DNA of 64,000 bases from Macrostomum lignano (Eukaryota): assembly GCA_002269645.1 (NCBI GenBank), contig NIVC01002838.1, forward strand, positions 1-64,000. The letters are read 5' to 3'. The notes under the pieces are model-generated. The model searched no databases. It saw only the letters and a program-made list of their open reading frames with translations, and was not told the origin of the DNA. The position numbers and the translations under genes were made by a program. Shown one piece after another: positions 10,651-62,156 of the stretch. Within the stretch, counting starts at the first letter, position 1, and each line of letters opens with the position of its first letter.

Positions 10651-11544
10651 AAGTTTGTATACTGACTTCAACCCAGTTTCCTCAGTAAACCGTGTAATGT
10701 CGAAATTTCTATAAAAATGCTGCTTGCTTTAAAGAAAATAAAAAGATAGTTTCTGTGACTGTTGAATTTGTTTTGTAGCTCAATGAAAGTCTGTGAGAAT
10801 ATTGTCTGCTTTTGTTTCCTAATTCTTTAAAAACTTCAATTTTTATTACGTGATTGTATTTTTTTCAATTTGTTAAGCACTTCAAGAGCGAACTTTAATT
10901 GAAAATTTCATTTTGCAATATTCCATTCTGTTTACTGGAAGTAGAGTGTAAGGAAAACGGTACTGTTTTTTATTAGTAGAGACAGGAGGCTGTGTGCGCA
11001 TTGTCGCACAGCCGGCGAGAGGCATTACTACGAGCAGAGGCACACACTCACACAGGAGTGTACAGCGGCCCTAACTTTATTTATCGTCAGACATGTGCAC
11101 TTCACTGTGCTTTGGAGTTGGCCCTCAAAGCCGTTAATATCACGAGCAGAGGCAATTAAGCCAAAGTTAATTTGACTGCACTTGGAATCACGCCCCCCCC
11201 CCCGAAATAAAATTGGTACGATAATTTTGTTTTGTCAGTCAGCTGAGCATTGATAGTTGAGTCTATTAACATAAAAACATTTTTTATTGTCGCTAAACCT
11301 ATTATTTATATCGCTACTTTTTGTGAGTAGCGATCTCCTACTCTTTACGTAGCCATATCAGATCGATACGACACCCAACTCAGGTCACTTCATCCTTGGA
11401 GCGACATATGTCATCGATTGCTGTTAGCCTGTACCACAATTCAAACAGGCATGCGGTATGATTTTCTCAACTCTCCTTTTGATACCAATATGATCGCAGT
11501 GTTTGACTTTGCTCTGCCTCTAAAAAAATAATAATAACTGGTTG

Positions 11545-21494: not shown

Positions 21495-22600
21495 CTAGCA
21501 ATCTACGCCCCCCGTTGGGGAGCCAAAGAAATGCAATACACGTTTTTTTAATAAGCTACATGTATCCTTGAAATCTTAAAAAAATCTCCTGTCAAACCTT
21601 GTAAGCCTTGACATGTCAGTAATTCCCCCCCACAAGCTTTAACTTATCAACTTCCCCCCTTGACATCACAGCAATGCCCCCAATAAGCCTTGGAAATCTA
21701 AAAACTGTCAACCTTCTAACCCTAACCCTAGCCTAACCCTAACCCTAACCCTAACCTAACATTGAAATTTCAGTAATTCTCTCTAAGAGTCATTATAGCA
21801 CTACTACAGCATTATAGCGATTCCCTGCAAGCCTCGACATCATAGGGATTCCCAAATGAATCTCTTAACTTCGACATGAAGCTTCTTTTATTTTTTACAT
21901 TACGCTTTTTTTATCAGCGATCCCTCCCCTGATGAGGCATCAAATAATGTAATAAAAAGTTTTCAATAAACTACATGTAGCTTCTGACTTTAGCCTTGAA
22001 ATCTCATTTATACCCCCGTGAGCCTTGAAATCTCAGCCATTCCCCCCATAAGCCTTGACATGTCAGCGATGGCCCCCATAAACCTTGAAATCTAAAAAAT
22101 CCCCTGTTATTCTGTTAACCTTGAAACCCGATAAAATATAACCCTCAACCCACACCTGACCTAAACCTAACTTTAACCCAACCTAAAGCCTTGAAATCTC
22201 AGCAATTCTTCTCCCCTAAGCCTTGAAATTTTAGTGATTCCTTCTTTAAGAATCACAGCACTATAACGATTTCCACCAAGCTTTGACATCGTAGCAATTC
22301 CCAAAGGAATCTTTTAACTTCGACATGACTTTTCTTTTATGTATACATAGTGCTACTTTTATTTTTTACATGACTCTTCTTCTATCAGCGACCCCCCCCC
22401 GTGGCGAGCCAAAGAATGCAATAAAAAAATTGAGTAAAGTACATGAACTTTGAAGTAGCTTCTGACTTTTGCTTTGACATCTCAGAACCCCCCCCCCCGT
22501 AATCTCAGTTATTCTCTGAGAGCCTTTACGTCTCAGTTTTTCTCCCCAGCACAGCATTATAGCTGCATTTAATTTTTACATGACACCCTTCATGTCTGAC
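21495..22600 (-). mobile_element. Helitron-like non-autonomous element (3' end at 21495), internally duplicated, with (CCCTAA)n-like tracts
   Basis: On the minus strand it ends in a hairpin (CCCCAACGGGG) about 13 nt before CTAG followed by T. A second copy lies at 63267-63650. It interrupts the B2 downstream region. Confidence 0.55.
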
Positions 22601-28600: not shown

Positions 28601-29580
28601 TTACATGACGCTTCTATGATTTTTACATGACGCTTCTATGATTTTTACATGACGCTTCTATGATTTTTACATGACGCTTCTATGATTGTTTACATGACGC
28701 TTCTATGATTTTTACATGACGCTTCTATGATTTTTACATGACGCTTCTATGATTGTTTACATGACGCTTCTATGATTGTTTACATGACGCTTCTATGATT
28801 TTTACATGACGCTTCTATGATTGTTTACATGACGCTTCTATGATTGTTTACATGACGCTTCTATGATTTTTACATGACGCTTCTATGATTTTTACATGAC
28901 GCTTCTATGATTTTTACATGACGCTTCTATGATTGTTTACATGACGCTTCTATGATTGTTTACATGACGCTTCTATGATTGTTTACATGACGCTTCTATG
29001 ATTTTTACATGACGCTTCTATGATTGTTTACATGACGCTTCTATGATTGTTTACATGACGCTTCTATGATTGTTTACATGACGCTTCTATGATTTTTACA
29101 TGACGCTTCTATGATTTTTACATGACGCTTCTATGATTTTTAATGACGCTTCTATGATTTTTACATGACGCTTCTATGATTTTTACATGACGCTTCTATG
29201 ATTTTTACATGACGCTTCTATGATTTTTACATGACGCTTCTATGATTTTTAATGACGCTTCTATGATTTTTATATGACGCTTCTACGATTTTTATATGAC
29301 GCTTCTATGATTGTTGAAATGACGCATCTATGATTTTTATATGACGCTTCTCTGATTTTTTAAATGACGCTTCTATGATTGTTTACATGACGCTTCTATG
29401 ATTGTTTACATGACGCTTCTTTGATTGTTTACATGACGCTTCTATGATTGTTTACATGACACTTCTATGATTGTTTACATGACGCTTCTATGATTTTTTA
29501 AATGACGCTTCTATGATTGTTTACATGACGCTTCTTTGTTTTTTAAATGACGCATCTATGATTTTTACATGATGCTTCTT
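22600..29580. repeat. ~7-kb satellite of 22/23-bp units (CATGACGCTTCTATGATT[G]TTTA), ~300 units
   Basis: Tandem unit read directly. The edges are degenerate and the right-centre is more homogeneous. Confidence 0.97.
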
Positions 29581-32521: not shown

Positions 32522-33553
32522 ATGTCAAGGCTCCTACATCTCACTGTTCTGTGCGCCCTGCTCTCGGTCTCTGACTGTGTGATCAGAGTCAAAACTACAC
32601 AGCACAGAGTAGTCAACAATGACTGCCTGAACTTGTCGCTGTCGGTGTGGCAGATGCCGCGAGCCTCCGCCTACCTGCTCGACTGCTTCGTGTCGAGTCG
32701 GTCGTTCCGTCTCGGCAGCGTCGGCGTGGTGCAGCGGAACAAGCGAGACGCCTCGTGCGCGCTGTTCCGCTTCGGTGAGGTGTGCCACCTGCTCAACTTG
32801 ACCAGCTCGTCTACACCGACTGAGGCAGTGGCCGCTGAGAGCAGCTGCGAAACCCTGGTGGACTCGGAGTACGACGCGATTGCTGCGAACGAGCAGTTCA
32901 GCGCTGTGTGGGTCGGAGACAGGGGACCGGCGCTGGAGAACCTGGTGTGCGGCTCCCATGGACAGAGGAACCCCATGAGGTCCAGTGGTGTCTCATGGAC
33001 GAACGAAGGCGCTCGCATGGACGGAGTCTCGTCTCGGCTTTGGGTGGACGACCCCACAGGTCTGGACTTCACGGCGTCCTACACCTGGGTGCTGCACCTC
33101 AAGAGAACTCCAAGGGTTCAGTGCTTCATCGAGCTGGACAATTGCGAATCAATAGGAGGCAGCTCATTCTTAAGCCACTTTTGGGAATATTGCCGTGGTT
33201 CATCAGAGACGCGATGTCTGTTTTCCAATATTGGCGACGATAAATGGGTGGTGCACACGGGCTCTGTGCTGCCCGCCGATCCTGAGCGCTTCTTTATCGC
33301 TGGCTTGTCAACAGATAAGCCGTCAGGTGAACGCCAATTTCTGCTTGGATCCGCGTTCTTGACTGAGCCCCTGAAATCTGGCAACGGGTCCACATTCAAA
33401 TATAACGACACTGGCGCCTGCATCAAGATCGGCTGGCGGGGTGCAAGCTCGCCATCGTTCAACGGATTTTTCCAGGGCGTCATCCGCGCAGTCGCCATGA
33501 CGAACTCAGCCGTGACTGAGCAGGTGGTGCGGCAGCTGCTTCAGCAGCCCTGA
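32522..33553 (+). CDS. Secreted PAN/apple-like + ConA-like (LamG) protein, paralog B3 (343 aa)
   Basis: Intact ORF with signal peptide and family core. Small insertions in the C-terminal loops. Confidence 0.88.
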   Translation: MSRLLHLTVLCALLSVSDCVIRVKTTQHRVVNNDCLNLSLSVWQMPRASAYLLDCFVSSRSFRLGSVGVVQRNKRDASCALFRFGEVCHLLNLTSSSTPTEAVAAESSCETLVDSEYDAIAANEQFSAVWVGDRGPALENLVCGSHGQRNPMRSSGVSWTNEGARMDGVSSRLWVDDPTGLDFTASYTWVLHLKRTPRVQCFIELDNCESIGGSSFLSHFWEYCRGSSETRCLFSNIGDDKWVVHTGSVLPADPERFFIAGLSTDKPSGERQFLLGSAFLTEPLKSGNGSTFKYNDTGACIKIGWRGASSPSFNGFFQGVIRAVAMTNSAVTEQVVRQLLQQP

Positions 33554-38913: not shown

Positions 38914-39915
38914 TTACACTCCGAAGAAAATTTTATTGATGGTTTCTTCCGGTAGATTCGTATTAGAAACCGCCACGGCTCTGACCACACCATAAAGCAT
39001 GAAGGTGCCGTCATACCGCCAGCCCACATGGATGCAGGCTCCGGCTTGGTTAAAGCTGTTCGTCCGAGCGAAGACGCCGGCAGTCGGTAGAAACTTTGAT
39101 CCATAGAAGAAGCGAGTCAGGTTCTGCTGCCTCCTGAATGAGACGCCAGCGATGAAGAACTCGTTCGGGTCCGCAGGCAGCACCGAGCCGGTCTGGAATC
39201 TGGCGAAGTAACCCGGGTTCAGGAAGAGGGCGCGACTCACTCCGGACATTACTGAGTACTCTTGCAGGTGGTCGAGCATGCTGCCGGATCCGATGCAGCT
39301 GCTCAGTTCTAAAAAGCTAGCTAAACCTGGCGTTCTCTTCAGGTGCAGCACCCAGGTGTAGGATGCCGTGAAGTCCAGACCTGTGGGGTCGTCCACCCAC
39401 AGCCAAGACGAGACTCCGTCCATGCGAGCGCCCTCACTCGTCCAGGTCACATTGAGCGACTTCATGGGGTTCCTCTGTCCCTCGGAGCCACACACCAGGT
39501 TCTCCAGCGCCGGTCCCCTGTCTCCGACCCACACAGCGCTGAAGTGCTCGTTCGCAGCGATCGCGTCGTACTCCGAGTCCACCACGGTCTCGCAGGAGCT
39601 CTCAGCGGCCACTCCTGCAGTCGGTGTCGTCGAGGTCATGTTGAGCAGGCGGCACACCTCACCGAAGCGGAACAGCGCGCAGGAGGCGTCTCGCTTGTTC
39701 CGCTGCACCACGCCGACGCTGCCGAGACGGAGAGAGCGACTGGACGAGAAACAGTTGATCATTGAGGCCGAGGGCTGAGGCTTCTGCCACACCGCCAAAG
39801 ACAAGTTCAGGCACTTACGCTTTGATATTTTCAGCTTCGTGATTTGGAGGCTCTTTTGAGCATTGCAGCTGACTAGCAGGGCACTCAAAACTATTAAGAA
39901 GAAGACAGTATTCAT
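38914..39915 (-). CDS. Secreted PAN/apple-like + ConA-like (LamG) protein, paralog A2 (333 aa)
   Basis: Intact ORF. Start placed at ATG 39915 (MNTVFF...) by alignment with A1, not at 39996 as in the ORF track. Confidence 0.88.
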   Translation of the reverse strand: MNTVFFLIVLSALLVSCNAQKSLQITKLKISKRKCLNLSLAVWQKPQPSASMINCFSSSRSLRLGSVGVVQRNKRDASCALFRFGEVCRLLNMTSTTPTAGVAAESSCETVVDSEYDAIAANEHFSAVWVGDRGPALENLVCGSEGQRNPMKSLNVTWTSEGARMDGVSSWLWVDDPTGLDFTASYTWVLHLKRTPGLASFLELSSCIGSGSMLDHLQEYSVMSGVSRALFLNPGYFARFQTGSVLPADPNEFFIAGVSFRRQQNLTRFFYGSKFLPTAGVFARTNSFNQAGACIHVGWRYDGTFMLYGVVRAVAVSNTNLPEETINKIFFGV

Positions 39916-41454
39916 TTCGAGTGTCTTTACAAGTTTAAATAAATAGATCGTATATTTGGTTTGGTGTTTTACAGAAATGCATTCAGAATTTATCAATTTA
40001 TTGGACGGAGCTCAGGACTTAGAGATGTTGAAAATGTTTTGATTGGCTGAGATAGTTTGCAACGAATTTCCACAGAGCGGGATTGCTAGACCAAGAGCAT
40101 CTGAGGTACACTGCACTTCAGTTGTCCCTGGGTGCATGGGTGAGGATATACAAAAAGTTTTAGCAACAAGTTGACTACAAGCAAGAAACCGCATAGTGAC
40201 TAATGCCACTGTGCCTTGAAGCCCCAAATTCAGGCCTTAATGGCGCCATGGTTCTTTGAAGCTGGAATTGTCCTCCAACACTCAACTCCAACTAGTCAAC
40301 ACTCAACTCCAGTGAGTTCACTCTCACCCAACTGAAAAAGGACCCGCCATCTTGTCTGTGAACTTCGGAGACGCCCCTGTGATTTGCGATCCCTGCTCTG
40401 GGCATCCGATCACAGCTGTGACCGAGAGCAGCATCGTCGCAGGTCGATCGCTGGTAGACTCTGGTCAATTATGTCACGGTCGCCTTGGTCAGCCAGACAC
40501 TCTGCATCGCTGTTGGCAGCGTCGATCAAATAAAGATTCAACAGTCCTACTGTACATGCAGGCTTCGTCACACGCAAGGTATTAATGGTGTTTTTAAAAA
40601 ACATAATTACTGAATCCCTGCCAGTTGTCATTTGGCCCAGTGACCATTTTCAATGCAAGGTAAAAATACACTAGCATTGATCTGCTGCGGTAAGGGTAAA
40701 ACCAGCCTGTATCTGCCTTGGAACTGGGCTAATTCACCCACAATTCCATGAAAATCCATGAAGTTATACGTGTACATGTACCTACATGTACTGTGTCATG
40801 AGATCAAAGTCGTGCCCCAACCCACCGTACGTGACTTAGAAGCTGCGACCAGCTCCGAGTGACTCAATTTTAGTGCTTGACGGTGCATGCATTACAAAGG
40901 CGTGTGAATTTGAAGATGTACATGTAAAAGGGTAAAATTGCTCAACTTTCAGACATAGCTCGAGCAGCAATACACGAAACACGAGCTTTATTGGGCGACT
41001 TTTGTGAAGCGACTATTGGGTGCTTATAACAATGCCCTCCTAGACTCCTGTCATGGAGAAATCATTCATGATCCATGATCCATGTCAATTCATGCAAGTC
41101 AATGAAACTTTCATGGATGCATTCTTTTGCTCCATGCTTTTATCATGGATGGAAGCACGTTCGTATGTTTCTCTCAAAAAATATTTATGTGCCATTGTTT
41201 GCCATTTTTTTTCTAAGCAAACAATGTAGAAAATAACAAAAAGTAGTACTTTACTCACTTTAAAAATTTTGTAGACTACATTTTTGTTTTTTGCAATACA
41301 TCTATTGTTCTAACCATTCTATAGCGTACGTCGAAGTTGTGTTTTTTTAATGTCACTTGCTCGATCGTTTATTTAGTATATTCCCCTTATGTTATTTTGG
41401 CTAGTAGAAAACCGACGAGACCGGTTCTATATCCACAGGATCCTTTGAAACTTC

Positions 41455-43344: not shown

Positions 43345-46300
43345 ATGGCGCTATTAATTGGTCCCTCTAGCGTTGGGAAAAGTTTACTCCTTAAGCGACT
43401 TACCACAGACGAAAAAGATAAAGATCTAGTTGCGACTGTACCATCGGTAAGTTTTTTTCAATGACAATTTTTTGTTTAGTCAAGCTTTTTACTGATAATA
43501 CGCAGGAAACTTTGTAAAATTTCATGCTTTTGCCTTCAGAATGGTTAAAGTCTAACTTACCAAAACTAACTTGTAATTAAATAAGTATACTTTAAATTTG
43601 ATAGTGTAAGTGTAAGTGACACTATATCATTTTTGCATTGTAAAAATGCAAATAAAGCAATGTTAGAACATAGAAAATACAGAAATCTTGCACCTTTTTC
43701 CAACAATAGTCTTCATAGGTGGCATAGGTTTAATGCACTGCCTTTGCTTTATTATCTTTTTAGCAAAACACAAAAATCATACAAGCAGTTTATAAGATAA
43801 AAAGTAATAAATAATAGTTGTAAAAACTTGTGTGTATATAATACCACTAAAATTAAGTATACAATAAAATAAATAACTTTTTTATTTGAAACTTCAAATA
43901 AAGGCTAATTATAATTAGTTAATTATAAAATATTAATAGGAAGTTTTTTAAGTAGCATTAGCAGGTGTAGCAAAAAGTTTCGCATTGCATGATTCATTAT
44001 GCAATGAATCAAAGCAATTGATGTTTTAATGCAAGCAATAAAGTTCACAATTTTACCTCATTATTGAAGTTCATTAATAAGAAATTAGTACATTTGCTTA
44101 ATCATCTTTATAAAGAGAGATTAATTAGACATTCCATACTCTGAATCATATAGTATATACTCAAAAATTTGGGTGTGCATTGGCCTTGCACCATGCCAAA
44201 AGTTGCATGCCAAAAGTAGGCATCCACAGTTGGCATGTATCACTCCCAAAAAATACACTTGGCATGTCCTAATACTAAAACTCTAGCAATGTTTGTCTGT
44301 GTGTGTGTGTGTGTTGCAAGTGAACTCCTACAATATTTGCAAGTCAGTAGAGGTCGGACGGGATCCCGATCCCGATCCCGAAACCTCGGGATCCCGAGGA
44401 AAATTGGATTCCCGCGGGATCGGGATCCCGACCCTAAAAAAAACGGGAATCGGGAACAGGTCCTTTGGTTCCAAATTTGTAGAATTGATGATTGCTTTCA
44501 TGCATTTTGTTTTACTTGTACTTGTTACATCGTTACTTTTTTGGTTACAAAACTTTGCATTCATTCTCTCGTGTTTTACCTCTTGATCTTAACATTGTTA
44601 AAGTTATAAATATTCCATTGATATTTACAAACTTTGTAGAACATATAAATCAAATCGGATTAGTATGCATGGTTGCGCAATGATTAGTGAATAGAAATTA
44701 CAGAAGCTCAATACATGCGCAATCTCTGCTGCGATTAAAATTTGATCACTCCCTTTTCACTCCATTATAAGAACACAAAAACTTTTTTTTCTCCCTTATT
44801 TTAGCACGTCTAGGCCTGTGATTGTGTGCGCAAAGGTTATATAACTTGCGCAATCGTTTATTAATTTATTTTCACTGTTTCAGTTTCATCATTTTTGGGC
44901 GTGAAATCTGAGGCGTGAATTCAGTAGTTAGTGTTAACACATGTTGCTTGTAATGTTGTATCTTAAATAGCTTTTTACTTTTTGTGTAATGTAAATAATG
45001 TTTTTTTAAATGTTATGATCGTTTGTTTTATTTTTAATTGCTAAAATAAAATAAATAAACCGAATGTCTTTAGACAGGATTTACATCAATATTTTCCATT
45101 CCAAATGCTTTCCAATTACTTAACAAATCACTTATCAAGTCATCATTAATTCATTCATCAGTCGTTGTGCAGGTGGAAAGTTGCAAACTTCTGTTGTTTA
45201 TTTCTCAATAAAAAGGCAGTCGGTGGATGCTACAAAAATGGTACATGTACATTTACGAGTGTAACTTCCTGATTTGCCTCACAGAGATGGAGATCTTAGT
45301 GATATGGATAACGTGAGTGCCATCGGCAGAAACTGTTCGCTTTAAACAAGCAACAAAAAACAGGATATAAGAAAGCACAACAGCAGACAAAGTAGGCAAT
45401 ATTTTACTTTTGCACGTTTAATTATTTTACTTTGAATTAGTGTTGAAGTAGGACATCGTGATCCACCTTACAAATATAGATAAATTGTGTTATATTTTAA
45501 AAGGCTAAAATTTCATATCACTTTCTATCAAATCTACAAATTTGTTAAATGTTTAAGGAATAAGGTCCTCAGGGATTTTATATTGCTTTTTATAATGTGG
45601 ATCGCAACTTCCTTTTTAGCGCCAATCTAAATTGAAAAAGTAACTGCGTAAGCCGTAAAGTAAAAAATGCCTAAAAATCCGTAACAAACGTCTCTAGCAT
45701 TGGCAAAGTGCATCTTCGAAATTATTTTCCGGCATTGAAGTCAACAAATGGCAAATTAATCTTACACAAAACAATCTTTTCTAGCGAATCAGGTGACAGA
45801 GAAGCCCGCCTATCTGAGAAAACATTTCCAGCAATACTAAATAGCCTTTCACTAGAAACGCTAGATGCAGGAATGCAAAATAGTTTTTTCACTAAGGGAA
45901 TAATCGAAGTCCGAAGCCTTTCAGTTGCCTTTGTAGACCAGTAGATAAGTGGATCACTACTGGCTGGCTCCAGTTTTGAGGTTAGAAACTCCGTCAACAG
46001 CTCTTCAATGCAGCTGCTGGGCTGCAGCACTGAGTTGGCATTAAAATTACTGAACAGATCGTCCAGAAGATGGCGCTTTGGAGGAGGGGGCTGGTCAAAA
46101 GCTTCCCTCGTGCATTCATCATCCTCTGGAGAAGGCGAACTTGCAAAGTTGCCATTGCCAGAAGTTACTTCTTGTTCTTGTCTACTATTATGACCAGTGA
46201 CAGTAGTAGTCGTAGAACAGAATTCTAACACAATCTTCTTCTTCTGGTCTCTCTCAGCAGCAGGGAAAAAAGCAAGCTTGTAACGCGGATCCAGGGCTGT

Positions 46301-49300
46301 TGCCAGGATGCAGTCCAATCTGATAGGGATGTCAGAAAATCGCGAATTGACACCACGTACCAGTGAATCAAACAGCGACCTCACACCCGAAATTGCATCC
46401 TTATCGAGTGCTGCTTTTTCGAGAAACTTTTGCAACAGTGCAACCATTGGAATCAAATATGAGATGCTGGTTGACTCTTTGCTAACTTCCAGAGTTAGCT
46501 CTTCAAAAATTGAAAGCAGATTAACTACTTTTTCGATTATGGTAAATTCATTGCTCGAAATTTCTTCGAAATCCGATCGATCAGCAACGAAGGCAGAGAT
46601 AGCACTTTGCTGTTCCAAAACTCTTTGCAGCATGTGTAATGTAGAGTTCCAACGAGTTGGAACATCACACTTGAGCTTGTGCTGTGGCAGCTCCAATGCT
46701 TTCTGAAGCTTTTCAAATCGGCCTTGAGATGTTGTTGAATGGTGCATGGAGCTAACAAAGCGTCGGCATTTGCCTATAATTGCCTCAACACACGGTTGCT
46801 GCTTAAGTGCATCTTGCACAATCAGATTCAACTTGTGAGCTGCACAGCTCACACTTCCTCCGATATTCTCCGAGAAATTGGAGTCAGCAGTAGCACCATT
46901 GGCTGAAGAAGGTAGCATTGTGCGCACTGCCTTCAGCATGTTAGCAGCATTGTCAGTAACAATTGCTATTGTTTTACTTTCGATACGCCAGTCAGCGAAA
47001 ATCTCAGTCAGCACATTTGCAATGTTAGAAGAAGTGTGAACTTCAATCAGATGTTGCATAGCCAGTGTTGTGCTAAATCTCTCTAGCTTGCAGACTTGAG
47101 CTTGGGTGTTGTCGTTGCAACAATCAGCCTCAGAGACGGAAAGCATTTCTTTGATTCCGTGGACTGTGAGTCCAAGGAAGGACAGGCCTTTTTCAGACCA
47201 AATGTCACAGGTAACTGCCACTGAGGTCAAGTCGTCAAGCTGCTGCCTGATGTTCTTCTTGGCACAGTTGTACACATCATTGAGCTTTTCGCGGTAAAAT
47301 TTTTCAGACTTAATTGTATACTGTGGTGATGCAATCTTCATCAGGCCTTGAAATCCTGCTTCTTGAACCATGGTCCATGGTTGACCATCCAACAATATCA
47401 TACGAACAATTGCTAAGTCAAGTTCCTTTGACCTGGAATCCTCGATGTCCCATGGACGGCTTTTCTTAATTGATTGTTGCAATGTTGGCTGGAAAAGCCC
47501 TTCAGCTTTTGAGCTCTCCTTCAGTTTCTGGCTGTCTCTCTGCTGTTTAATTTGTTGGAGCTCTTCATATAAGTCCTTATGGCATGATTGTAAATGGCGA
47601 AGAGCCCCACTTGTAGATCCAGTGGAACACAGTAACATTTTTCCACAACCTGGGCTTAAGCATTTAGCAAAATCTTGTCCATTGTGCACTTCCTTTTTAA
47701 AAAAGCGCCAGACTGGACTTGAGTTTATACCAGACATTAGGTTGATAACTTGATGTTAATTTGACTTGTATATGGTGTAGCACGTGTGCTGAAAATGGAA
47801 AATGATGAAACATTAGTTATACATGTTTACAATCTACATTATAAGAAAATATATAAAAAATATAGGCACCTAATGGTTTTATAATTATTTTTATAGTTTG
47901 TTACTGAAAGTACTAAACATAAATAGTTTAAATCAAATGGCAATAAACTAGGCCTATTTAGTGACTAGTAATGATAATGAGATAATAATAGCAAGTTGAT
48001 TGTTGAATAATAAAAAATTCACTGAATTATTTGAATAAAAACTATAGATTGAAAAATGAAATAGCATGCTACGCTAGGATATTCAATGCCTATGCCCTTA
48101 TTCACTATTTTTTCAATAAGATTTTTAGAGACATTAAATACAGGACAAAAGCCTAGTATTATTCTAAGGAATAGGCTAGATTACGTTAAAATCAATTGAA
48201 GAATTTAATTACAAAAATAATAATCAAACTGAACTCCTAACTCTATTCTATTAAATAATTCTTAATATTGACTTGACAATAAGTCAGAAAATTTTGAAAT
48301 TCAAACAAATAGTCACACAAAAAGACAAGTGATAAAATCAAAAAAATTGCAAAAAGGTCTCTACTCTATATAACATATTGATAAAAAACATTTGCAAAAT
48401 TAAAAGTATTAAATTTATTTAACAGATTAAATCCCATTTTTTAAAAATAAATCTTTTTGATAAAAAAGAATTTTTTTATTGACAAATAAGCTACAATTTA
48501 TACTACAATTTATTCTGTTATTGATGAATAGAATACAATTGATTAAGTCAATTGTCATTGAACATAGTGATAATGAAGTAACCACTTTATCTAATCTGGC
48601 ATATTTCTAGCTAGCTAACTTTAACTTTTTTGCATTTTTTGTTAATAAACACTAAATAGTTTTCAATGGAATATACACCATCACCATACTGCTATATAGT
48701 ATATGCTATGAACGTTCAATAAATTATTTTGACTTCAAATTTGTGCTTAGCAAACAGTTCTAAGAATTCCCATAGTGAAACAAACACAAATAACTAATAA
48801 TTTCAAAATTTGTAGCCAAAATAATTTGTTGATTTCAGGTATCAATTATAAACAAATTATATATGTACTAAATATACAATCTACATTTGCTTGTTTGTAA
48901 CGGTTGACAGACTTGAAATTCTTGACCATCATTATTACGAAATGCAAATAAATATAGAAATTTACAATCCTATATACTAAAAATGAGTTGATTGTTTGTA
49001 CGCACCACGCAATCGATTAGAGAAAAACTGGCTGGATTTTCTCTTTTACTTTTACTTTTACTTCTACTTTTTTCAATTTTTTTTTCAGTTGATATAATAA
49101 ACTTGATAATTAACATAATATCGTGTCTATTATGTTAATTATTGAAAGAAAGTCCCAAGCAATCAGTTTCAGCATCAGTTTCAATTTTTCTAGCTTTCTA
49201 TGCTAAAATATTTTAGGCCAAGGTTTATACATTCCATATATACTACATTTTTTCTCTATTTATTTAATTTATAAAATATATTAATTTAAAAGTAAAAACA

Positions 49301-52300: not shown

Positions 52301-55300
52301 GCAATGAAAAAATGTCATTTTTATTGTCACAATGTAAAAAAGGTCATTTATTGTCGTAGCACTCGCAGAGTTTTAAGAATAGGCATGCATTTGTTATTAT
52401 CAATTTTTGTTCGGGTGTGCACCTAGCATGATCTGGACTATGGTAGGCATTTAGGTAAATTCAAATATATTTGTAATGACAATGTTGTAACTTCTTGTCA
52501 GACTTATATTTTTGTTCTTTCTTTGCATCTTTGGTCATTGACATTGTCATTAATGTTAACAATGAACTTGATGTTATCTTATATAACATATAAATCTTAT
52601 ATTAATAGAAATTTGTTAATCCGTTATTGTAAAAGAATCCTAATAGCAGTCCATTAATATAAATTAAAAATATTGATATTTAATAATGCTTATTAATGGA
52701 CTAGTGCCCAACACTTAAATTAAACATATAATTATATTGTGCACACTTACACTGAAAAGTAGGGATTGCAAAATCTCGGATTTTTGTGATCCTGGGATCC
52801 AGGGAATCCCGGGATCAGAATAGTACAGATTTTTATGCTTCTAGGTTGAAATTTTAAGGCAAAATATGCGCTAAACACTTTTGCTTACTTTTTTATTGTT
52901 ATAGAGATAATGATCCATTGTAGATGATAAACAGCATTATCTTGTGACATATTGAAGTAAGTAAGTAGTATAAATGTACTAATTAGTAGTAAGGAAGCAA
53001 ATCATATAAAAATTTAAATTGGAATTAATTTCACATTTAAATATGTTATGTGGGGTTTAAAAAGGTGCCACACGATGTGAGGCAATTAATGGATATTAGC
53101 GCAGTATAATAAACTAGTTGTGGGCCTAATTATGTTTATATTACAGCACTTTTTGTAAAAATATTGACAAAAATTAGTCCTGGGATTTAAGCCCAATCCT
53201 GGGATCCTAGGATTGCAATCCCTACTGAAAAGAGAAACTTAAGTGTCCTTATCACAAGAAATAAAGAGTTTCTATAACTAAAACCAAATTTTATACCTTA
53301 TTAAGGAACACTAAATTTCTGAGCCTTTATGGGAAAACAATGCATATAGAAAAATTAAAGTCACTTTTTTAATAATCTCCTTTAAACATAATTCACTTGT
53401 TGCATCTTGATCACAGCACTTCAATGCCCCTGAACCAAGCAGTTGCAGCATCTTTGAGTTGATCAATCTATTGCCCATAGAGTGCCTACTTTAGATATTG
53501 AAATAGGTAAAGTCACCCAAAGCCAGATCTGGTAAATATGCAAGGTAGGTGAGGCAGCTCTTGGAAATTTGCAATTTATATCACAGAACTTACACAGAAT
53601 GCTCAATCAGCGATTTAATGAAATTAAACTGCGTAGAAATAGATATGCGTACAAACTACTAATCCGGTGAAGAAACATAAGTAGCCATAGACTGTTACTC
53701 AAGTGTGTAGCACAAGACCGCCTGATTTATTAAGTCAGTAACCAGAAACCATGCAGCAATTGAAACCTAAAATGTGAAACGTAGAAACCAGTTAAACTGG
53801 AGCACAAAAAGTTTAAATCCAATGTCTCGCAGGAAATGATGGCAACAGGGACTATAGTGGAGAAGTCCTGTTGCAATTCGGAGTGACGAGCGTGACCACG
53901 TTGGTCGATTCCTGTTCGCATTTTTTTGTTGATCGTTGATAAATGCATTCACTAGAGGGCTCAAGCCATGGCACCGAGTTGAGGCGGAGGAAGAGTTGAC
54001 ACAGGAAGATGCTTCCGTAGATCGCAATCTAAGACAGCGGGCTTGAAGCGAAGAAACTTGCAGCTTTTTTTTTAAGTTTTTCACCTTGCTCCTACATTGC
54101 CTTAACTTCTGAACCACTTCCGTCCTTGACGCACGTTTCCTGCCCGGCAAACTCAGTGGCAGTGTACTGGCAGTCGTTCCGCAAATTTTTGCTTTCTTTT
54201 GAATTTGAGTCTCGGATAGATGTAACTCTTCTGAGACACAGGCTCTTGGCTTTGGAGGCGAGCGGGTCTTCTGCTCCTGAGCCGTGTCTTTATACAGCTT
54301 CAGTGTTGGATGCGCATTCCAGACAAGTCGACTGTGCAGCTCATGATGGTCTTTCGGGCACATATACATGTGATCAGCAAAGTGCTGACTGCACACCACT
54401 GCAGTCGCCCATTTGTGCTCATACTTCTTCCCCAGAAGGTCAGCACAGAAGATGCGACGAGCCCAGTCTTCACACCTACAGCGTAAAATTCAACATAAAT
54501 CGTACACAAGTTTTCATGCAAATAATATTAGTCACGATTCGACTAAGCTTACTGGGCACGGTTTGAAGGAAAGCTGTAAAACCTGGTTTCTGGTGGACAA
54601 TGATAGGAATAATTTAGACAGCCATAGGCAGCACACTGTTTTCGCGATTTTGCAGAAGGCATACTTCACTGTAGCAAAACCAAACATCCAAATTCTTTGT
54701 AAAAGACAATGCTGCTGCAAGTAATTCTATTAAATGAATAAATCTTGTGCTACACACTTGAGTAATAGTCTATGGCTACTTATGTTTCTTCACCAGATAA
54801 GTAGTTTGTATGCATATCTATTTCTACGCAGTTTAATTTCATTAAATCGCTGATTGAGCATTCTGTGTAAGTTCTGTGATTTATATAGCAACCTTTATAA
54901 TTCTGATACTATGAGCTGGTCTATTGTCATGCAGTTGTATTATACTTTAGGTCAACATTTCTTGCCAATTTTATTTTAGTGCCTAGCATAGACTAATAAT
55001 AGATCTTTGTGACTATCTGCTTATGCAGTAGAAAGTCCAGCAGCAGCAGACCTTTTGAATCCCAAGACTATTAGCATGATCTTGCTACCACTGTATGCAT
55101 GACACATTACACATGATGCATGATGATGATGCATGACAACATACACATTAGCCATATGGCAGTGAATTTCTACAGGCTTTGAGCCTTCTAGTGTTTGGAA
55201 TTTGATAATAAAGCTAGTGCTTAGCTCTATGCTTAAGATGCAATTCTTGTATAGATGCCATGATATGCTAGAAATACAATGGTACTGTGACCTATTGGCA

Positions 55301-58300
55301 ATAGATTTGAGACTGAAATAACGAATGACTAATATAGACTTTTTGAATACTTGTATGCTGGAGTTTTGGAGCTTTAATGTCTAGGGATCTTGGTCAGGCT
55401 CAACTATTGTATTTGTGACAGGCCTTTTGGCCCTGTCTTTTTAAACTCCTAACTATTGATGCTAGTGTTTATTAATATCCTACAAGCTGCCACCAAAGTT
55501 GTTGTAGGGGTGTTCCCATCTGCTAACTAAAGTTTATCCTAATTGCACTTCTATTTTCACTCTTTAACTGTTTCTTAGGATTTCATTTGAATATACTGGT
55601 AGCATCTTATGTATTAGTCTGGTAGCGTCTTATGTATTAGTCTGGTAGCGTCTTATGTATTAGTCTGGTAGCATCTTATGTATGGCCTGAGTGGTCTAGT
55701 ACTGGTTCATAAACTTATTAGATTGTCCTAGTCAGGCCTTCACTGGGATTAGAGGGTCATAGCACAACTCTCAGAATTTCCCTTGTATATCTCCCAATCC
55801 CTTCTCTTAGTAATTTTCTGAGCACTATTGCTCCCTCTTTCCTTAAAATAACTAACTCAATAAGATTTCAAAGTTTATCTGAGAATATAGAATGAACCAA
55901 TGTTATAGCGCACAAATATTTCAAGAGCAAGAAAAGGTTACTTTTATTTGGGCAAAATTCACTCATATATATAGGATTCGGGAAGGCTAAGTTATAACAA
56001 AAAAATTTTTCCATTTATAATTCGCTATTTAAAACAAAGTAGAATAGTGTTTCTTAGTTTGCACGCTAATTCAGTTTTACTGTAGTTTAAGCAATTTTTG
56101 CGTGTATAATAGGATCAGCAAAGTTACAATGATCTATTAAGGTATAATTATAGAACAAACATTCTATTATAGGCACTAGCAAATGACTTATTAAAGTATT
56201 ATAGAGACATATTATAGGCACTGGTAAATATTGCTTCTCATATGCACCTAACATCTTTTTATGCAATATAATCCAATATACCTCTATTTAAATTGTTTGT
56301 TGGTAGGCATTAGTCTATATATATTTATGTATTTGTTTAAAATCATATTTAACAATTTGTTATCAAATCAAGCTTAGCCTTATACTATCTAGTCAGAACT
56401 TTTCCCATGACAAAACATGTGTTGTGACTAAGAAATTGCGTAATACTAGGCTTTTTTAGGAATTGGAAATTCAGAATTAATATGTTTTTTTAATATATGC
56501 ATTGTATTTGTAAGAATGCTAGAGAAAAGAGATTGGTTTTATTTAGGCTTTTTTGACCTTATTTACTTAGGCTAGCAAATTATAGATATTAGGCCTTTTT
56601 TTGTTAGAAACTTCTTTCTATTATTATATTTTGCCATTATAGGATCTTTTTATTATAGGCATAGTGGGCATAAAATGAATGAAACCATTATATTTCCTTA
56701 GTTATAACCACAAGAGCAGTTTTTTCATAGACATAATTGTAGCTATTGTTGTTACCTGTTTTATTACATTTGCCATAGGTATATTATAGTTAATTATTTA
56801 TAATCAAAGCAATAAAATGGTATAAAAACTGAGTTTATTGTTTTTATTATTATCAGTCATATATTTTTTCACTTTTATTGATCTATGTTACCAAGAAAAT
56901 AAATTTTGTTTTTGCAATTTATAATTCAAAACAATTTTTTGAAAAATTTAAACTTGACCATTGTCAGATCAAATTCAATGAAAAATATTCTAAATATTAA
57001 ATTTTCTTGTAATGATTTAATTCAATTCTTATTTACCTAAAGATATCAGGTCGAAAAATTAGCGATCTGCTGTGCTTCTGACTTGAATCATATTCCAGTA
57101 GTATTCATCTGTTTACATGCACCTGTCATATTAACAGATTGGCACAAGCCTGGTTAAAGTGCAAGTCAGTCGAAAGAAGTCGGTCACAATTCGTGAACTT
57201 GGAGGCTCAATGGCACCTGTTTGGCCAGACTATTATAGCGATGTGGCTGCCATCATTGTGAGCTTAGCAGCTTTGTAATTAGACTCTGTTAAAATGATAG
57301 CAAACTATATGGCCATATCTTCAGTCACTTGGCCAGCCTCCCAGATCCTCAGTTGCTGTGCTAGCCTCCCAGATCCTCAGTTGCTGGGCCAGCCTCCCAG
57401 ATTCTTAGTTGCTGGGCCAGCCTCCCAGATCCTCAGTTGCTGGGCCAGCCTCCCAGATCCTCAGTTGCTGGGCCAGCCTCCCAGATCCTCAGTTGCTGGG
57501 CCAGCCTCCCAGATCTTCAGTTGCTGGGCCAGCCTCCCAGATCCTCAGTTGCTGGGCCAGCCTCCCAGATCCTCAGTTGCTGGGCCAGCCTCCCAGATTC
57601 TTAGTTGCTGGGCCAGCCTCCCAGATCCTCAGTTGCTGGGCCAGCCTCCCAGATCCTCAGTTTCTGGGCCAGCCTCCCAGATCCTCAGTTGCTGGGCCAG
57701 CTTCCCAGACCCTCAGTTATTGGGCCAGCCTCCCAGATCCTCAGTTGCTTGGCCACCAGCCCCCCCCCGATCCTCAGTTGCTTGGCCACCAGCCTCCCAG
57801 ATCCTCAGTTGCTGAGCCACCACCCTCCAATATCCTCAGTTGCTGCGCTAGCCTTGCAGATCCCCAGTTGCTGTGTTTCTGTCACCCTGTTAGATCCACA
57901 AGGCAAATAACACTTGTAATGCATTTAAATTCAATATGAGTATAATATGCGTAATAAATAAATAAATATTGCCACCCACACTGCAAACTTATCCATGCAG
58001 TTTGTAGTTGACGCCTCAAACCTGCAGCAGGTTGGTGCTGCCACCATCCAGTTCATTCACCTGTTGAACAGTCCGCAAACTCAGAGCTCAAAAATTTTGC
58101 TGTTATTTAATAAACTGTGAGTGACTTGACTGTCTCTTTGTTTCATTCATCATATCATTTGTTCACTAAATATGATTCATGTGTGCAATTCATTCCAGCG
58201 ACCTTGTAACATCAGAAGCTGACAAAGGCAAATTTATGCACCTATTCATGCTGGACGATATACTTCGTCACTCCAGACAAGAGGTGTCTGTTGCCGAAAT

Positions 58301-58361
58301 TTCCGCTCTTAATAGAACCGGCTTTGCCGCCATGAAAGAGTGGCTTGAACTTTGTGCTTGA
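43345..58361 (+). CDS. ARL16: ARF-like small GTPase, ARL16-like; 4 coding exons 43345-43446, 57138-57257, 58001-58116, 58199-58361 (166 aa)
   Basis: Spliced product MALLIGPSSVGKSLLLKRL..TVPS|IGTSLV..VTIRELGGSMAPVWPDYY..|FVVDASN..ILLLFNKL|DL..VAEISALNRTG..EWL. P-loop, RELGG switch II and NKxD motifs match ARL16. All introns are GT-AG with consistent phases (0,0,2); 501 nt in total. Confidence 0.88.
44348..49683 (-). mobile_element. Complete autonomous hAT (Ac-like) DNA transposon, 5336 bp
   Basis: 17-bp perfect TIRs TAGAGGTCGGACGGGAT, exact 8-bp TSD CAAGTCAG (44340-44347, 49684-49691), subterminal (CCCGAT)n repeats, intact transposase ORF. Confidence 0.95.
45722..47737 (-). CDS. hAT transposase with BED zinc finger (ZBED1/4-like, 671 aa)
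   Basis: BED finger VWRFF..AKC..C..STSGALRHL..CH; catalytic motifs TCDIWS, IVTDNAANM and SSERLFS; CAAH; DVPTRWNS; C-terminal hATC dimerisation region. Confidence 0.95.
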   Translation of the reverse strand: MSGINSSPVWRFFKKEVHNGQDFAKCLSPGCGKMLLCSTGSTSGALRHLQSCHKDLYEELQQIKQQRDSQKLKESSKAEGLFQPTLQQSIKKSRPWDIEDSRSKELDLAIVRMILLDGQPWTMVQEAGFQGLMKIASPQYTIKSEKFYREKLNDVYNCAKKNIRQQLDDLTSVAVTCDIWSEKGLSFLGLTVHGIKEMLSVSEADCCNDNTQAQVCKLERFSTTLAMQHLIEVHTSSNIANVLTEIFADWRIESKTIAIVTDNAANMLKAVRTMLPSSANGATADSNFSENIGGSVSCAAHKLNLIVQDALKQQPCVEAIIGKCRRFVSSMHHSTTSQGRFEKLQKALELPQHKLKCDVPTRWNSTLHMLQRVLEQQSAISAFVADRSDFEEISSNEFTIIEKVVNLLSIFEELTLEVSKESTSISYLIPMVALLQKFLEKAALDKDAISGVRSLFDSLVRGVNSRFSDIPIRLDCILATALDPRYKLAFFPAAERDQKKKIVLEFCSTTTTVTGHNSRQEQEVTSGNGNFASSPSPEDDECTREAFDQPPPPKRHLLDDLFSNFNANSVLQPSSCIEELLTEFLTSKLEPASSDPLIYWSTKATERLRTSIIPLVKKLFCIPASSVSSERLFSIAGNVFSDRRASLSPDSLEKIVLCKINLPFVDFNAGK
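50780..51960. repeat. Purine-rich (GA) low-complexity tract
   Basis: Almost pure G/A. It explains the Ser/Leu-rich minus-strand ORFs. Confidence 0.85.
52760..53224. mobile_element. hAT-family MITE, 465 bp
   Basis: TIRs TAGGGATTGCAA / TTGCAATCCCTA, exact 8-bp TSD CTGAAAAG, subterminal GGGATCC repeats. Confidence 0.92.
53582..54878 (-). mobile_element. Internally deleted P-superfamily (THAP) transposon, 1297 bp, 136-bp TIRs
   Basis: 53582-53717 is the reverse complement of 54743-54878 with a few mismatches. CA...TG termini and an exact 8-bp TSD ATTTATAT (53574-53581, 54879-54886). Confidence 0.9.
53767..54662 (-). CDS. Truncated P-type transposase: THAP zinc finger plus coiled coil; exons 54662-54553 and 54475-53767 (~272 aa)
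   Basis: Exon 1 is MPSAKSRKQCAAYGCLN..RFYSFPSNRA. A 77-bp GTAAG..TGTAG intron is phase-consistent. Exon 2 reads CEDWARRIFCADLL..VCSQHF..RLVWNAHPTL, then a basic coiled coil and WSRSSLRIATGLLHYSPCCHHFLR (start of the P transposase core). No catalytic domain. Confidence 0.78.
55595..55682. repeat. Four 23-bp tandem units (CTGGTAGCRTCTTATGTATTAGT)
   Basis: Read directly. Confidence 0.85.
57330..57870. repeat. 28-bp minisatellite (GGGCCAGCCTCCCAGATCCTCAGTTGCT) in ARL16 intron 2
   Basis: Read directly. It explains ORFs 57294-57939. Confidence 0.93.
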
Positions 58362-58399
58362 CTCTATTCAGTTTATTGTGTACTACTTACATGTCGCTA

Positions 58400-59035
58400 G
58401 TGGACTGCCCAACCTCGCCCAAGCCCCTATGGACTAGCCGACCAATCAGCGATTGTCCTCCTCACTCCCTGCCCAACCTCCATTGACTAGCCGACCAATC
58501 AGCGATCGCCCCGCCTCACTCCCTGCCCAACCTCCATTGACTAGCGCCAACCAATCAGCGATCGCCCCGCTTCACTCCCTGCCCAACCCCGCCCAAGCCC
58601 CTATGGACTAGCCGACCAATCAGCGATCGCTCCGCCTCACTCCCTGCCCAACCTCCATTGACTAGCCGACCAATCAGCGATCGCCCCGCCTCACTCCCTG
58701 CCCAACCTCCATTGACTAGCCGACCAATCAGCAATCGCCCCGCCTCACTCCCTGCCCAACCCCGCCCAAGCCCCTATGGACTAGCCGACCAATCAGCGAT
58801 CGCCCCGCCTCACTCCCTGCCCAACCTCCATTGACTAGCGCCAACCAATCAGCGATCGCCCCGCCTCACTCCCTGCCCAAGCCCCTATGGACTAGCCGAC
58901 CAATCAGCGATTGGCCTCCTCACTCCCTGCCCAACCTCCATTGACTAGCCGACCAATCAGCGATCGCCCCGCCTCACTCCCTGCCCAACCCCGCCCAAGC
59001 CACTATGGACTAGCCCACCAATCAGAGATCGCCCG
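58400..59035. repeat. ~55-75-bp tandem repeat carrying CCAAT and GC-box motifs, 11 units, between ARL16 and the caspase gene
   Basis: Unit GACTAGCCGACCAATCAGCGATCGCCCCGCCTCACTCCCTGCCCAACCTCCATT with an optional CCCGCCCAAGCCCCTATG segment; 11 CCAATCAG copies counted. Confidence 0.9.
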
Positions 59036-59387
59036 TCTCATCCCTGCACTAAAAGTTAATTTGATCAATGTTTCTATATCTTTTTTAATACTATTTGTTC
59101 TTTTTATCTGTAATCTTTGTCGCTTTTTTGTATGCGACTTTGTTAAGCATTCTGTCTTATAACTTTTACGCATTATCAAAACGTGATAGAATATTTATTT
59201 GAAGATCACAAATACTACTTAGTAGATTTTTATTGTGCGAGCGTATTTGAACTGTAAATAAAAAACTTACGATTTTTAATTTTAGCTCACTTTTCATTTT
59301 AAAACGTTTTGTTTCTTTAAAGAGAACAATAAAAACTTTTGCGTCTGTTTAAACACAGTTGTATTTATTGATTGACTTTGCAGCCAA

Positions 59388-62156
59388 ATGGCGGACTCAA
59401 GCGATGCCGCGGTGAGGCCTAAAAACGAGAAAAAACGGCGAACTGAACGCGGCAGATCTGGCGGCTTTTTGTCGATTTTCGGTTGCGCCAGTTCAAAGAG
59501 TTCTTCGCCTCCTCCGATTGCTAAGTCGGAGCAGAGGACTAAACAAATTGCTGCTCCACCTGCTGTCAATCATAACAGCACCGCTGCTCCTGCTGCTGCA
59601 GCGGCTGCCCACTCTTCTGCTGGTGCTAAAGAGTACGCTTATTGTGCTTTGTTTTTATAGTTTTATGTACTAATTTTCAGCCCCTTCTTTTCCACCACCC
59701 CACATCTGCACCCCTCCTGTGCACCCACCCCACTTATCTCTCTACCCCTCCTGTGCACCGACCCCACTTATCTCTCTACCCCTCCTGTGCACCCACCCCA
59801 ATTTTCTCTCTACCCCTCGTGAACCCACCCCAATTTTCTCTCTACCCCTCCTGTGCACCCACCCCACTTATCTCTCTACCTCTCCTGTGCACCGACCCCA
59901 CTTATCTCTCTACCACTCTTGTGAACCCACCCCAATTTTCTCTCTACCCCTCCTGTGCACCCACCCCAATTTTCTCTCTACCCCTCCTGTGCGCCCACCT
60001 CGCATATCTCTCTACCCCTCCTGTGCACCCACCCCACTTTTCTCTCTACCCCTCGTGAACCCACCCCAATTTTCTCTCTACCCCTCCTGTGCGCCCACCT
60101 CACATATCTCTCTACCCCTCCTGTGCACCCACCCCAATTTTCTCTCTACCCCTCCTGTGCACCCACCCCAATTTTCTCTCTACCCCTCCTGTGCACCCAC
60201 CCCATTCTCTCTATATCTTCTATTGTCCACCGACTTTCCAGAGCGGCAACTGTCAGCGATCAATCATTTGACCCGAAGCACGTGTACAACATGAGACACC
60301 GGAGCAGAGGCCTGGCTTTGATATTCAACTTTCAACAGTTCCTACCCGAGACCAACCTGTCCTATCGACACGGCTCGGATAAGGACCTTAACAATGTAGT
60401 GGCCTCGTTCAAGCGGCTGCAGTTTCAGGTGCACAAGTTCAGCAACCTGTATGCTGTTGAGTTTCTTAGCCAGCTGAAACAAGGTATGGTTTTTAATTTT
60501 CGGTTTAAGAAAGAATCTCCATTTTTTCATAAAATAATTTTTGTAGTTTATTACTCTGAAATCTCACCCTTAAATGCTGAGATCTCACGTTAAGATACTG
60601 GAATCTCACCCTAAATATTAAAATCTCACCCTAAGATACTGAAATCTCATCCTAAGCTACTGATATCTCATCCTAACGTACTGAAATCTCATCATAAGTT
60701 ACTGAAATCTCACCCTAAGATACTGGAATCTCACCTAAGATACTGAAATCTCACCGTAGGATACTGAAATCTCACCGTAGGATACTGAAATCTCACCGTA
60801 GGATTCTGAAATCTCACCGTAGGATACTGAAATCTCACCGTAGGATACTGAAATCTCACCCTAACGTCCTGAAATCTTACCCTAAGATACTGAAGTCTCA
60901 CTCTAAATTTGAAGTTTTCATCCGCGAGTTTTCAATCTAGGAAAGAATGCACAAAAATGTTCACAAAGATGCTTGAACGACTCCCTCGCTACTCCTGCCC
61001 AGTGTCCGAGGTGAACCACAGCGACCACGACGCCATTGCCATAGTGATCATGTCCCACGGCGAGGAGGGCGTCATCTTTGCCAGCGACGGAGGCATCCCC
61101 CTGGTTGAGGTGTTCGAGCCTATCAGACAATGTCCCTCTCTGGTTGGCAAGCCAAAACTCTTCTTTCTGCAGGCCTGCCGTGGCAGCAAGTTCGACCCCG
61201 GCAAAGAGCAGGTAAGGATTGCTTCAAATTTGTACCTGTCAATCACTTGTCATTGAAAAACTGGCCACTAAAACTAAAACCACTAAATCACTTGTCACTT
61301 GATCTGTCATTGAACCTATCAATCACTTGCTCTTTACCTGTCACTGAACCTGTCAATCACTTGTCACTTGTCCTGTTACTGAACCTGCCAATCACCTGTC
61401 ACTTGACCTGCCAATCACTTGTCACTTGACCTGTCACAGGACCTGTCAATCACCTGTCACTTGACCTGTCAATCACTTGTCACTTGACCTGTCACTGAAC
61501 CTGCCAATCACCTGTCACTTGACCTGTCACTGAACCTGCCAATCACCTGTCACTTGACCTGTCACTGAACCTGCCAATTACCTGTCACTTGACCTGTCAA
61601 TCACCTGTCACTTGACCTGTCACTGAACCTGTCAATCACCTGTCACTTGACCTGTCACTGAACCTGTGAATCACTTAACTTTGAACTCATTAAGTGACAG
61701 GTGAAGCGACAGGTAATGAACTCGAAGTCATTACTGTTTTCAAAGTTACATGTAACTCAAAGCTGAAATATTTGACCATAAACCTGTCAGACGGACTCCG
61801 GTGTGGAGGAGACTGAACCCGAGGCCTTCAGACGCGCTTTGGACGCCGCTGACGGCATCAAGACCATCCAGCGGCTGCCGACTGACGCAGACTTCCTCAT
61901 CTGCTATTCGGTGGTGCCTGGCTATTTCTCCTGGCGCAATGGCACCCACGGATCCTGGTTTGTGCAGAAACTGACCGAGGTCCTGGCTGAGACAGACTGC
62001 TCCAAGGTTGAGTTCATGCGAGTCATGACTCGGGTTAACCGGGCGGTAGCCTACGAGTTTGAGTCGCACACGAACAATCCTCACCTGGATAGAAAGAAGC
62101 AGGTGCCATCTATTGTGTCCATGCTTACTAAGGAGCTGTACTTTCCATCGAAGTGA
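59388..62156 (+). CDS. Effector caspase (caspase-3/7-like); exons 59388-59632, 60242-60483, 61003-61211, 61791-62156 (353 aa)
   Basis: YNMRHRSRGLALIFN, RHGSDKD, catalytic MSHG and KPKLFFLQACRG, small subunit ADFLICYSVVPGYFSWRN..GSWF and KQVPSIVSMLTKELYF. GT-AG introns with phases 2,1,0; 1062 nt in total. Confidence 0.93.
59690..60215. repeat. ~34-bp C-rich minisatellite in caspase intron 1
   Basis: Unit TCTCTCTACCCCTCCTGTGCACCCACCCCAATTT and variants. Confidence 0.88.
60570..60905. repeat. 21-bp minisatellite (GATACTGAAATCTCACCGTAG) in caspase intron 2
   Basis: Read directly. Confidence 0.88.
61240..61672. repeat. Compound 10-13-bp minisatellite (CCTGTCAATCA / CCTGTCACTTGA / CCTGTCACTGAA) in caspase intron 3
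   Basis: Read directly. Confidence 0.88.

Follow-up and report, generated by a model that had tools for sequence, protein, structure and literature searches.

The DNA analysed here, referred to as the window, is a stretch of 64,000 nucleotides (positions 1–64,000) of Macrostomum lignano contig NIVC01002838.1. Positions 53582–54878 are occupied by a 1297-bp element in which long terminal inverted repeats (TIRs) enclose a gene for a THAP zinc finger and a putative coiled coil. This raises the question of whether the element encodes a repressor of transposition comparable to the Drosophila KP protein, whether it represents a THAP gene in an early stage of domestication, or whether it is a defective transposon whose reading frame has stayed open by chance. 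The findings point to the last of these, and the locus is very probably a non-autonomous, internally deleted and neutrally drifting copy of a Macrostomum P-superfamily (P/THAP9-type) DNA transposon.

Element ends, insertion site and gene

The element tips are of the CA..TG type (CACAGAAC...GTTCTGTG). The TIRs are 136 bp in length (53582–53717 versus 54743–54878) and are identical at 132 of 136 positions (97%), leaving four mismatches; if an 8-bp indel is allowed, the repeat shows a weak extension to ~150 bp. The target site duplication (TSD) is the 8-bp sequence ATTTATAT, which is repeated exactly at 53574–53581 and 54879–54886 and abuts both tips. The 31-nt tip is found at two sites only in the 64-kb window, the two element ends, where the chance expectation is 0. 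An earlier reading of the letters of this DNA (the sequence-only reading) had described a 1297-bp element with 136-bp TIRs, CA..TG ends and an exact 8-bp TSD, and all of its coordinates are confirmed. The predicted empty site is ...GCAATTTATATAGCAAC.... The possibility that the host site is itself a repeat was considered and rejected: the flanks of the element, when joined, have no convincing inverted repeat and occur a single time in the window.

The 8-bp TSD and the 136-bp TIRs are both in keeping with the P superfamily, in which TIR length varies. Galileo TIRs extend over hundreds of bp; the window element has far shorter ones, which nevertheless exceed those of P. The tip CACAGAAC..CAGAATGCTCAATCA is common to three related sequences that are described below (L001, L005 and L006).

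The gene carried by the element is on the minus strand and runs from an ATG at 54662 to a TAG at 53769–53767, over 272 codons with no stop and no frameshift. The features of the element are as follows.

53574–53581, no strand: left copy of the TSD ATTTATAT, an exact 8-bp direct repeat abutting the tip
53582–53717, minus strand: TIR at the 3′ end of the gene, 136 bp, 132/136 against the reverse complement of 54743–54878
53726–53731, minus strand: AATAAA, a polyadenylation-type hexamer from reading of the sequence, with a putative function
53767–53808, minus strand: post-junction tail of 13 unrelated codons (FVLQFNWFLRFTF) plus TAG; no relative aligns past 53809
53767–54475, minus strand: exon 2 including the stop codon, 709 nt, with the AG acceptor at 54477–54476 and the frame continuous with exon 1
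53808–53809, no strand: internal deletion junction after codon 259 (...GFKL), from the ends of tblastn alignments
53809–53985, minus strand: truncated P-transposase HTH region, about aa 201–259, from aligned relatives and 6p5a
54001–54126, minus strand: long basic helix, a putative coiled coil, aa 154–195, from AlphaFold, with L/V heptad spacing
54301–54635, minus strand: THAP zinc finger, aa 10–95, split by the intron (Pfam PF05485, E 5.9e-9)
54476–54552, minus strand: intron of 77 bp, GT..AG (GTAAGC..TGTAG), phase 2, conserved in L001
54553–54662, minus strand: exon 1 from the ATG, 110 nt, with the first zinc-ligand pair of the THAP finger
54743–54878, minus strand: TIR at the 5′ end of the gene, 136 bp, from self-comparison of the element ends
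54879–54886, no strand: right copy of the TSD ATTTATAT, an exact repeat of the left copy

Unspliced read-through of exon 1 meets an immediate stop. The position and phase of the intron (at the codon before CEDW) are the same in L001, whose intron is 72 nt, and in tblastn searches the proteins of dozens of relatives align separately to exon 1 and exon 2. The earlier description of an ATG-initiated two-exon frame of ~270 codons, with a 77-bp intron in the correct phase, also holds, and the 272 codons are uninterrupted. The stop codon of the truncated frame is 49 bp short of the TIR; the AATAAA hexamer is 36 nt past the stop codon, at the inner edge of the TIR.

The gene list of assembly GCA_002269645.1 has no gene called on the element, which is weak evidence against transcription. 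A collection of 15 billion proteins does not contain the exact spliced 272-aa protein, and exact-protein look-ups of the spliced product, the exon 2 open reading frame and P0001, a sister copy known as a protein, gave no match.

Several other features are present in the window. An intact open reading frame of 671 aa at 45722–47737 (minus strand) combines a BED zinc finger with a hAT dimerisation domain. Its product matches an NCBI protein exactly, and the range of that record, 35722–57737 of contig NIVC01002838.1, agrees with the window in both coordinates and sequence. The M. lignano annotation includes this frame with at least four paralogous gene models (Mlig006260g1-5). Its surroundings show no clear TIRs, and from its sequence the frame may belong to an active hAT element or be a domesticated gene of the ZBED type. 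Five paralogous single-exon open reading frames of 333–343 aa are at 1250–2251 (minus), 12971–13984 (plus), 20274–21287 (plus), 32522–33553 (plus) and 38914–39996 (minus), and they have hydrophobic, signal-peptide-like N-termini. The two that were scanned against Pfam (12971–13984 and 1250–2251) gave no match, and none of the five has its exact sequence in the protein collection; by their sequences they appear to be a lineage-specific tandem gene family. Minisatellites are dense (2461–3329, 9626–10658, 14932–16249, 22599–29579 and 57313–61674), and the 22599–29579 tract is a 7-kb array of a 23-bp unit in ~309 copies. Several of these minisatellites are open in all six frames and give rise to spurious long open reading frames.

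The encoded protein and the deletion junction

The THAP finger scores 37 bits in Pfam against a cut-off of 23.9. The C2CH ligands C10, C15, C65 and H68 are all present, as are the signature residues P32, W41, F69 and P93, and the finger is complete, as had been proposed. The basic coiled coil of the sequence-only reading is placed, by prediction, in the AlphaFold helix of aa 154–195, which has a block-mean pLDDT of 87–97 over aa 151–190. In the family profile this region aligns with the leucine-zipper region of the Drosophila transposase. Helices beyond it, to aa 254, are modelled with moderate confidence. The THAP part of the model is of low confidence (mean pLDDT 55.7) because the alignment is shallow, and only the helix was used from the model.

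The segment that follows the helix aligns with P0003, P0010, P0009 and P0040 (RPTWS..LATGLxHYSPRxxRxL..G..L), and via the family profile it corresponds to residues ~150–186 of the Drosophila P transposase structure 6p5a. No relative shows homology past codon 259, i.e. nt 53809, and many tblastn alignments stop exactly there. Beyond the junction, the relatives run on with LPSRxTIRR... into the RNase H core. Between the 91-bp post-junction stretch and the 3′ subterminal region of L005, nothing aligns outside the TIR. The junction had been put at ~53810, which is right, and the frame does run into unrelated sequence and stop before the TIR. One earlier statement needs to be modified, namely that the frame ends with the first residues of the transposase core. 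Some transposase sequence is indeed retained, but it is rather most of the HTH region, which precedes the RNase H core.

By deletion, this copy has lost the RNase H-like catalytic domain with its inserted GTP-binding domain, and it is therefore a non-autonomous derivative and not an autonomous member of its family. No further P-transposase remnant is found anywhere in the 64-kb window; additional exons thus cannot restore a full transposase, a possibility that had been raised before.

What remains of the protein has an N-terminal THAP finger, then a coiled coil, then an HTH region homologous to that of P transposase. The same N-terminus, together with an 8-bp TSD, is found in P-superfamily and THAP9-type members (P, 1360, Galileo, zebrafish Pdre and THAP9), from which the window element differs in its missing catalytic domains.

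The KP protein consists of the first 199 residues of the Drosophila P transposase (bioRxiv 10.1101/2020.10.06.328815). The junction of the window element aligns to L186 of that transposase (6p5a), and its breakpoint is inside the HTH, as in KP, and 13 residues upstream of KP's. As the two breakpoints are close in Drosophila coordinates, the expression ‘KP-like deleted P element’ is anatomically correct, and the earlier identification of such an element outside the insects is borne out. In both the Drosophila melanogaster KP element and the window element, the catalytic part is wholly deleted, both termini, the THAP finger and the leucine-rich helix are kept, the tail is short and out of frame, and the TSD is 8 bp. 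There are also differences. The TIRs of the window element are 136 bp, whereas those of KP are 31 bp, and the host is a flatworm. One intron precedes the breakpoint, compared with two in KP, and the third HTH helix (PSRTTLYRW) is lost, unlike in KP. The window element, in contrast to KP, shows signs of neutral decay, and its likeness to KP is known from sequence alone.

The likeness in architecture (THAP, helix and truncated HTH, with a breakpoint equivalent to L186 versus 199) does speak for a genuine KP-type (type II) repressor, that is, an expressed THAP/coiled-coil protein that binds the TIRs of the family and/or makes dead heteromers with transposase, and that has been spread or kept for damping transposition. 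The open frame and splice signals speak for it as well, as does the retention of the termini, the THAP finger and the dimerisation helix with one open frame.

Relatives and other deletion derivatives

An exhaustive HMMER search found 84 relatives at E ≤ 0.001. The closest protein matches are M. lignano ‘THAP-type domain-containing proteins’, and the element's subfamily has given rise to three or more other gene models in M. lignano, a finding that could be counted in favour of a KP-type repressor. The full-length relatives P0018 (844 aa) and P0022 (876 aa) extend further and include the catalytic core. With the closer partial proteins P0003 and P0010 they have in common the block RPTWS..LATGLxHYSPRCHRxL..GxxL. 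P0003 has the Pfam domain PF21787 (TNP-like_RNaseH_N), L003 has PF21788, PF21789 and PF22824, and the family profile matches the solved Drosophila P transposase 6p5a with an E value of 1.3e-27 over aligned residues 96–364.

A full-length parent was sought with an N-terminal profile (A3) and a core profile (A4) in a collection of 5.8 billion proteins, and no M. lignano protein with a transposase core was found. It should be pointed out that this word-index search is insensitive (P0002 was missed), so that a missing parent is not proof of absence. L002 and L003, which are ENA contigs with distant relatives, have no TIR similarity and are therefore uninformative on the parent. Metagenome contigs with the tip motif CACAGAA N4-7 CAGAATG NNN AATCA were rejected; these are 46 single matches, which are attributed to chance because they have no protein or DNA similarity to the family. 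The literature searched contains no paper linking Macrostomum with P elements or THAP transposons.

A separate observation concerns P0096, from a 2146-bp contig of the NCBI MAG ‘Kangiellaceae bacterium’. It is 62% identical to a flatworm-type P transposase core and has PF21787 and PF21788. The contig is most likely a eukaryotic contaminant in a bacterial bin.

A 72%-identical relative, L001, is present in Logan run SRR31628394. It starts 1 base before a homologous TIR (CACAGAATATACAACAGAATGGCGAATCAGCC), which is 72% identical over ~95 bp, and has the same intron and a longer open reading frame that reaches the RNase H domain. It also carries an 8-bp TSD-type repeat, GTCTTTGC.

At positions 378–418 of L001, in the 5′ region of this related element, there is a 25-bp tip-to-tip remnant (CACAGAATATAC-A-GTATATTCTGTG) within 8-bp direct repeats of GTCTTTGC. 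The remnant resembles either the footprint of a P-type excision that left ~12 nt of each terminus in place or an extreme mini-element, and it suggests that the family has recently been active in that organism.

M. lignano also has a 1020-bp derivative of a sister subfamily, at L005:9761–10780 and L006:9765–10798. Its tips are CACAGAATACACCAGAATGCTCAATCA and its 8-bp TSD is GTTGCAAG. The common TSD and flanks show that the two loci are one duplicated segment and not two insertions, which is consistent with recent large-scale duplication in M. lignano. The derivative is annotated as the partial genes BOX15_Mlig030330g1/g2, and the annotated gene models P0006 and P0085 belong to a related deletion derivative. 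That a gene model is annotated on such a derivative is a further point that may be cited for a KP-type repressor.

The L005/L006 derivative resembles the window element in its terminal motif (CACAGAAT..CAGAATGCTCAATCA), its 8-bp TSD, its length of ~1 kb, and the retention of the C-terminal half of THAP and of the helix. It has no exon 1, half of the THAP finger is gone, and it ends shortly after the helix. Thus, unlike the window element, it has an incomplete finger, and it differs further in its other deletion boundaries, its protein identity of ~37% and a near-perfect TIR of only ~28 bp. As the boundaries are not those of the window element, several kinds of deletion derivative coexist in the genome. 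Judged by these sequences, deletion derivatives in M. lignano look to arise stochastically.

Chance, selection and the function of the open frame

The crucial point is whether the open frame reflects selection or the age of the copy. The TIR arms differ at 2.9% of sites, which is ~1.5% per arm. A substitution-only simulation asked how often the ATG, the two splice sites and every one of the 272 codons survive. The probability that the open reading frame and splice sites stay intact is ~0.51 at 1.5% per site and 0.27 at 3%. At this age, the open frame is expected by chance with P ~0.5.

The sister copies P0001, P0002 and P0008 are known as proteins only, and none of them reaches the deletion junction. 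Compared with these copies and with outgroups, the window copy has five private replacements (H29Y, R37Q, R47C, R80H and P83L), which fall at otherwise conserved positions in the region where polarisation is possible; R247C and R250H, further on, are probably private as well. All seven, the five and the two probable ones, are C>T/G>A changes, six of them at CpG, and two of the four mismatches between the TIRs are also C>T/G>A. Five replacements in 363 nt, a handful of substitutions, amount to ~1.4%, and this is indistinguishable from the per-arm rate of the TIRs, which are non-coding. R47, a conserved Arg, aligns with R41/R42 of THAP1 at the boundary of helix H1 and loop L3 (PMC3479173).

In computational gene models, P0002 carries an N-terminal indel and, past ...EQKT, is read from the same DNA in the +1 frame, and P0001 has its N-terminus in a shifted frame. 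P0008 is homologous over a short stretch only and is a fragmentary copy or else a gene model of chimeric make-up. M. lignano has large recent duplications, and some of the ‘copies’ may therefore be duplicated loci and not independent insertions. The pattern at the protein level points to neutrality of the window copy. The sequence-only reading had set neutral decay of the frame among copies against a repressor, and such decay is seen in part, on evidence at the level of proteins only.

With regard to base composition, the observed/expected ratio of CpG is 0.82 in the window and 0.76 in the element, and that of TpG+CpA is 1.15. The substitutions of the element are mostly CpG>TpG/CpA, which hints at CpG hypermutability in the flatworm.

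A probable history of the element can be outlined. To judge from the full-length relatives, the parent transposase would have consisted of a THAP finger, a coiled coil, an HTH, an RNase H domain with a GTP-binding insertion, and a C-terminal domain. The deletion starts directly behind codon 259 and leaves ~91 bp in front of the 3′ TIR, and it may have come about by abortive gap repair after excision, the typical route. Both TIRs were kept, and the copy could therefore be mobilised in trans; its insertion at ATTTATAT gave the 8-bp duplication. Neutral drift since insertion would amount to ~1.5% per site, chiefly as C>T/G>A at CpG, and the 272-codon frame is probably still open because the copy is young.

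Given the intact open reading frame, ATG, splice sites, zinc ligands and AATAAA, a KP-like protein could be made from this copy, incidentally. If transcribed and spliced, the product would have a KP-like architecture and could in principle occupy the TIRs of the family, and it might also poison transposase multimers. A repressive effect, if any, would be a by-product of the deletion and not an evolved or domesticated function.

An evolved KP-type repressor, which had been the principal proposal for this locus, is not supported and seems unlikely. The architecture, the frame and the related gene models fit it, as pointed out above, but the open frame is to be expected by chance, and the private replacements are at conserved residues that include the Arg aligned to THAP1 R41/R42. 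In addition, P0002 and the N-terminus of P0001 are shifted in frame, the copy is without a called gene, and the insensitive profile searches revealed no active full-length transposase among M. lignano proteins that there would be to repress. It is quite improbable that there is an amplified family with this junction whose product inhibits, in a trans-dominant manner, a Macrostomum P-like transposase that is still active, i.e. a KP-type system that is convergent in a flatworm.

Early domestication, where the locus would be a nascent host THAP-domain gene derived from a P-like element and comparable to THAP9 or the Drosophila P-neogenes, had also been suggested. The finger is complete and the two-exon frame intact, as such a gene might have them. 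The TIRs and TSD are, however, both intact as well, which makes the element a mobile insertion and not an immobilised one. A 13-residue junk tail follows the junction, conserved sites are replaced and no gene is called; moreover, there are multiple decayed paralogous copies. Domestication thus fails to find support and is very improbable. It is least probable, to the point of being scarcely credible, that the element is hAT-type or another non-P element that merely captured a THAP exon: hAT and P elements have the 8-bp TSD in common and an intact hAT/BED frame is 6 kb away, but the alignment to the HTH region of P transposase takes in residues 195–259, past the THAP finger, TNP-like RNase H domains follow in relatives that have this N-terminus and TIR motif, and the Pfam scan shows no hAT similarity inside the element.

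The element, very probably a neutrally drifting deletion derivative, documents a P-superfamily family in the model flatworm M. lignano, which has TIRs of 136 bp, TSDs of 8 bp and an intron that is conserved, and from which several deletion derivatives have arisen independently. KP-like coding remnants appear to arise readily wherever P-type elements decay. This is of use for repeat annotation, since several of the M. lignano ‘THAP-type domain-containing proteins’ are such remnants. If the truncated protein were expressed and repressed transposition, it would be a second, independent example of KP-type self-regulation, and should a convergent KP-type repressor exist in this flatworm, the species would be amenable to a test by transgenesis.
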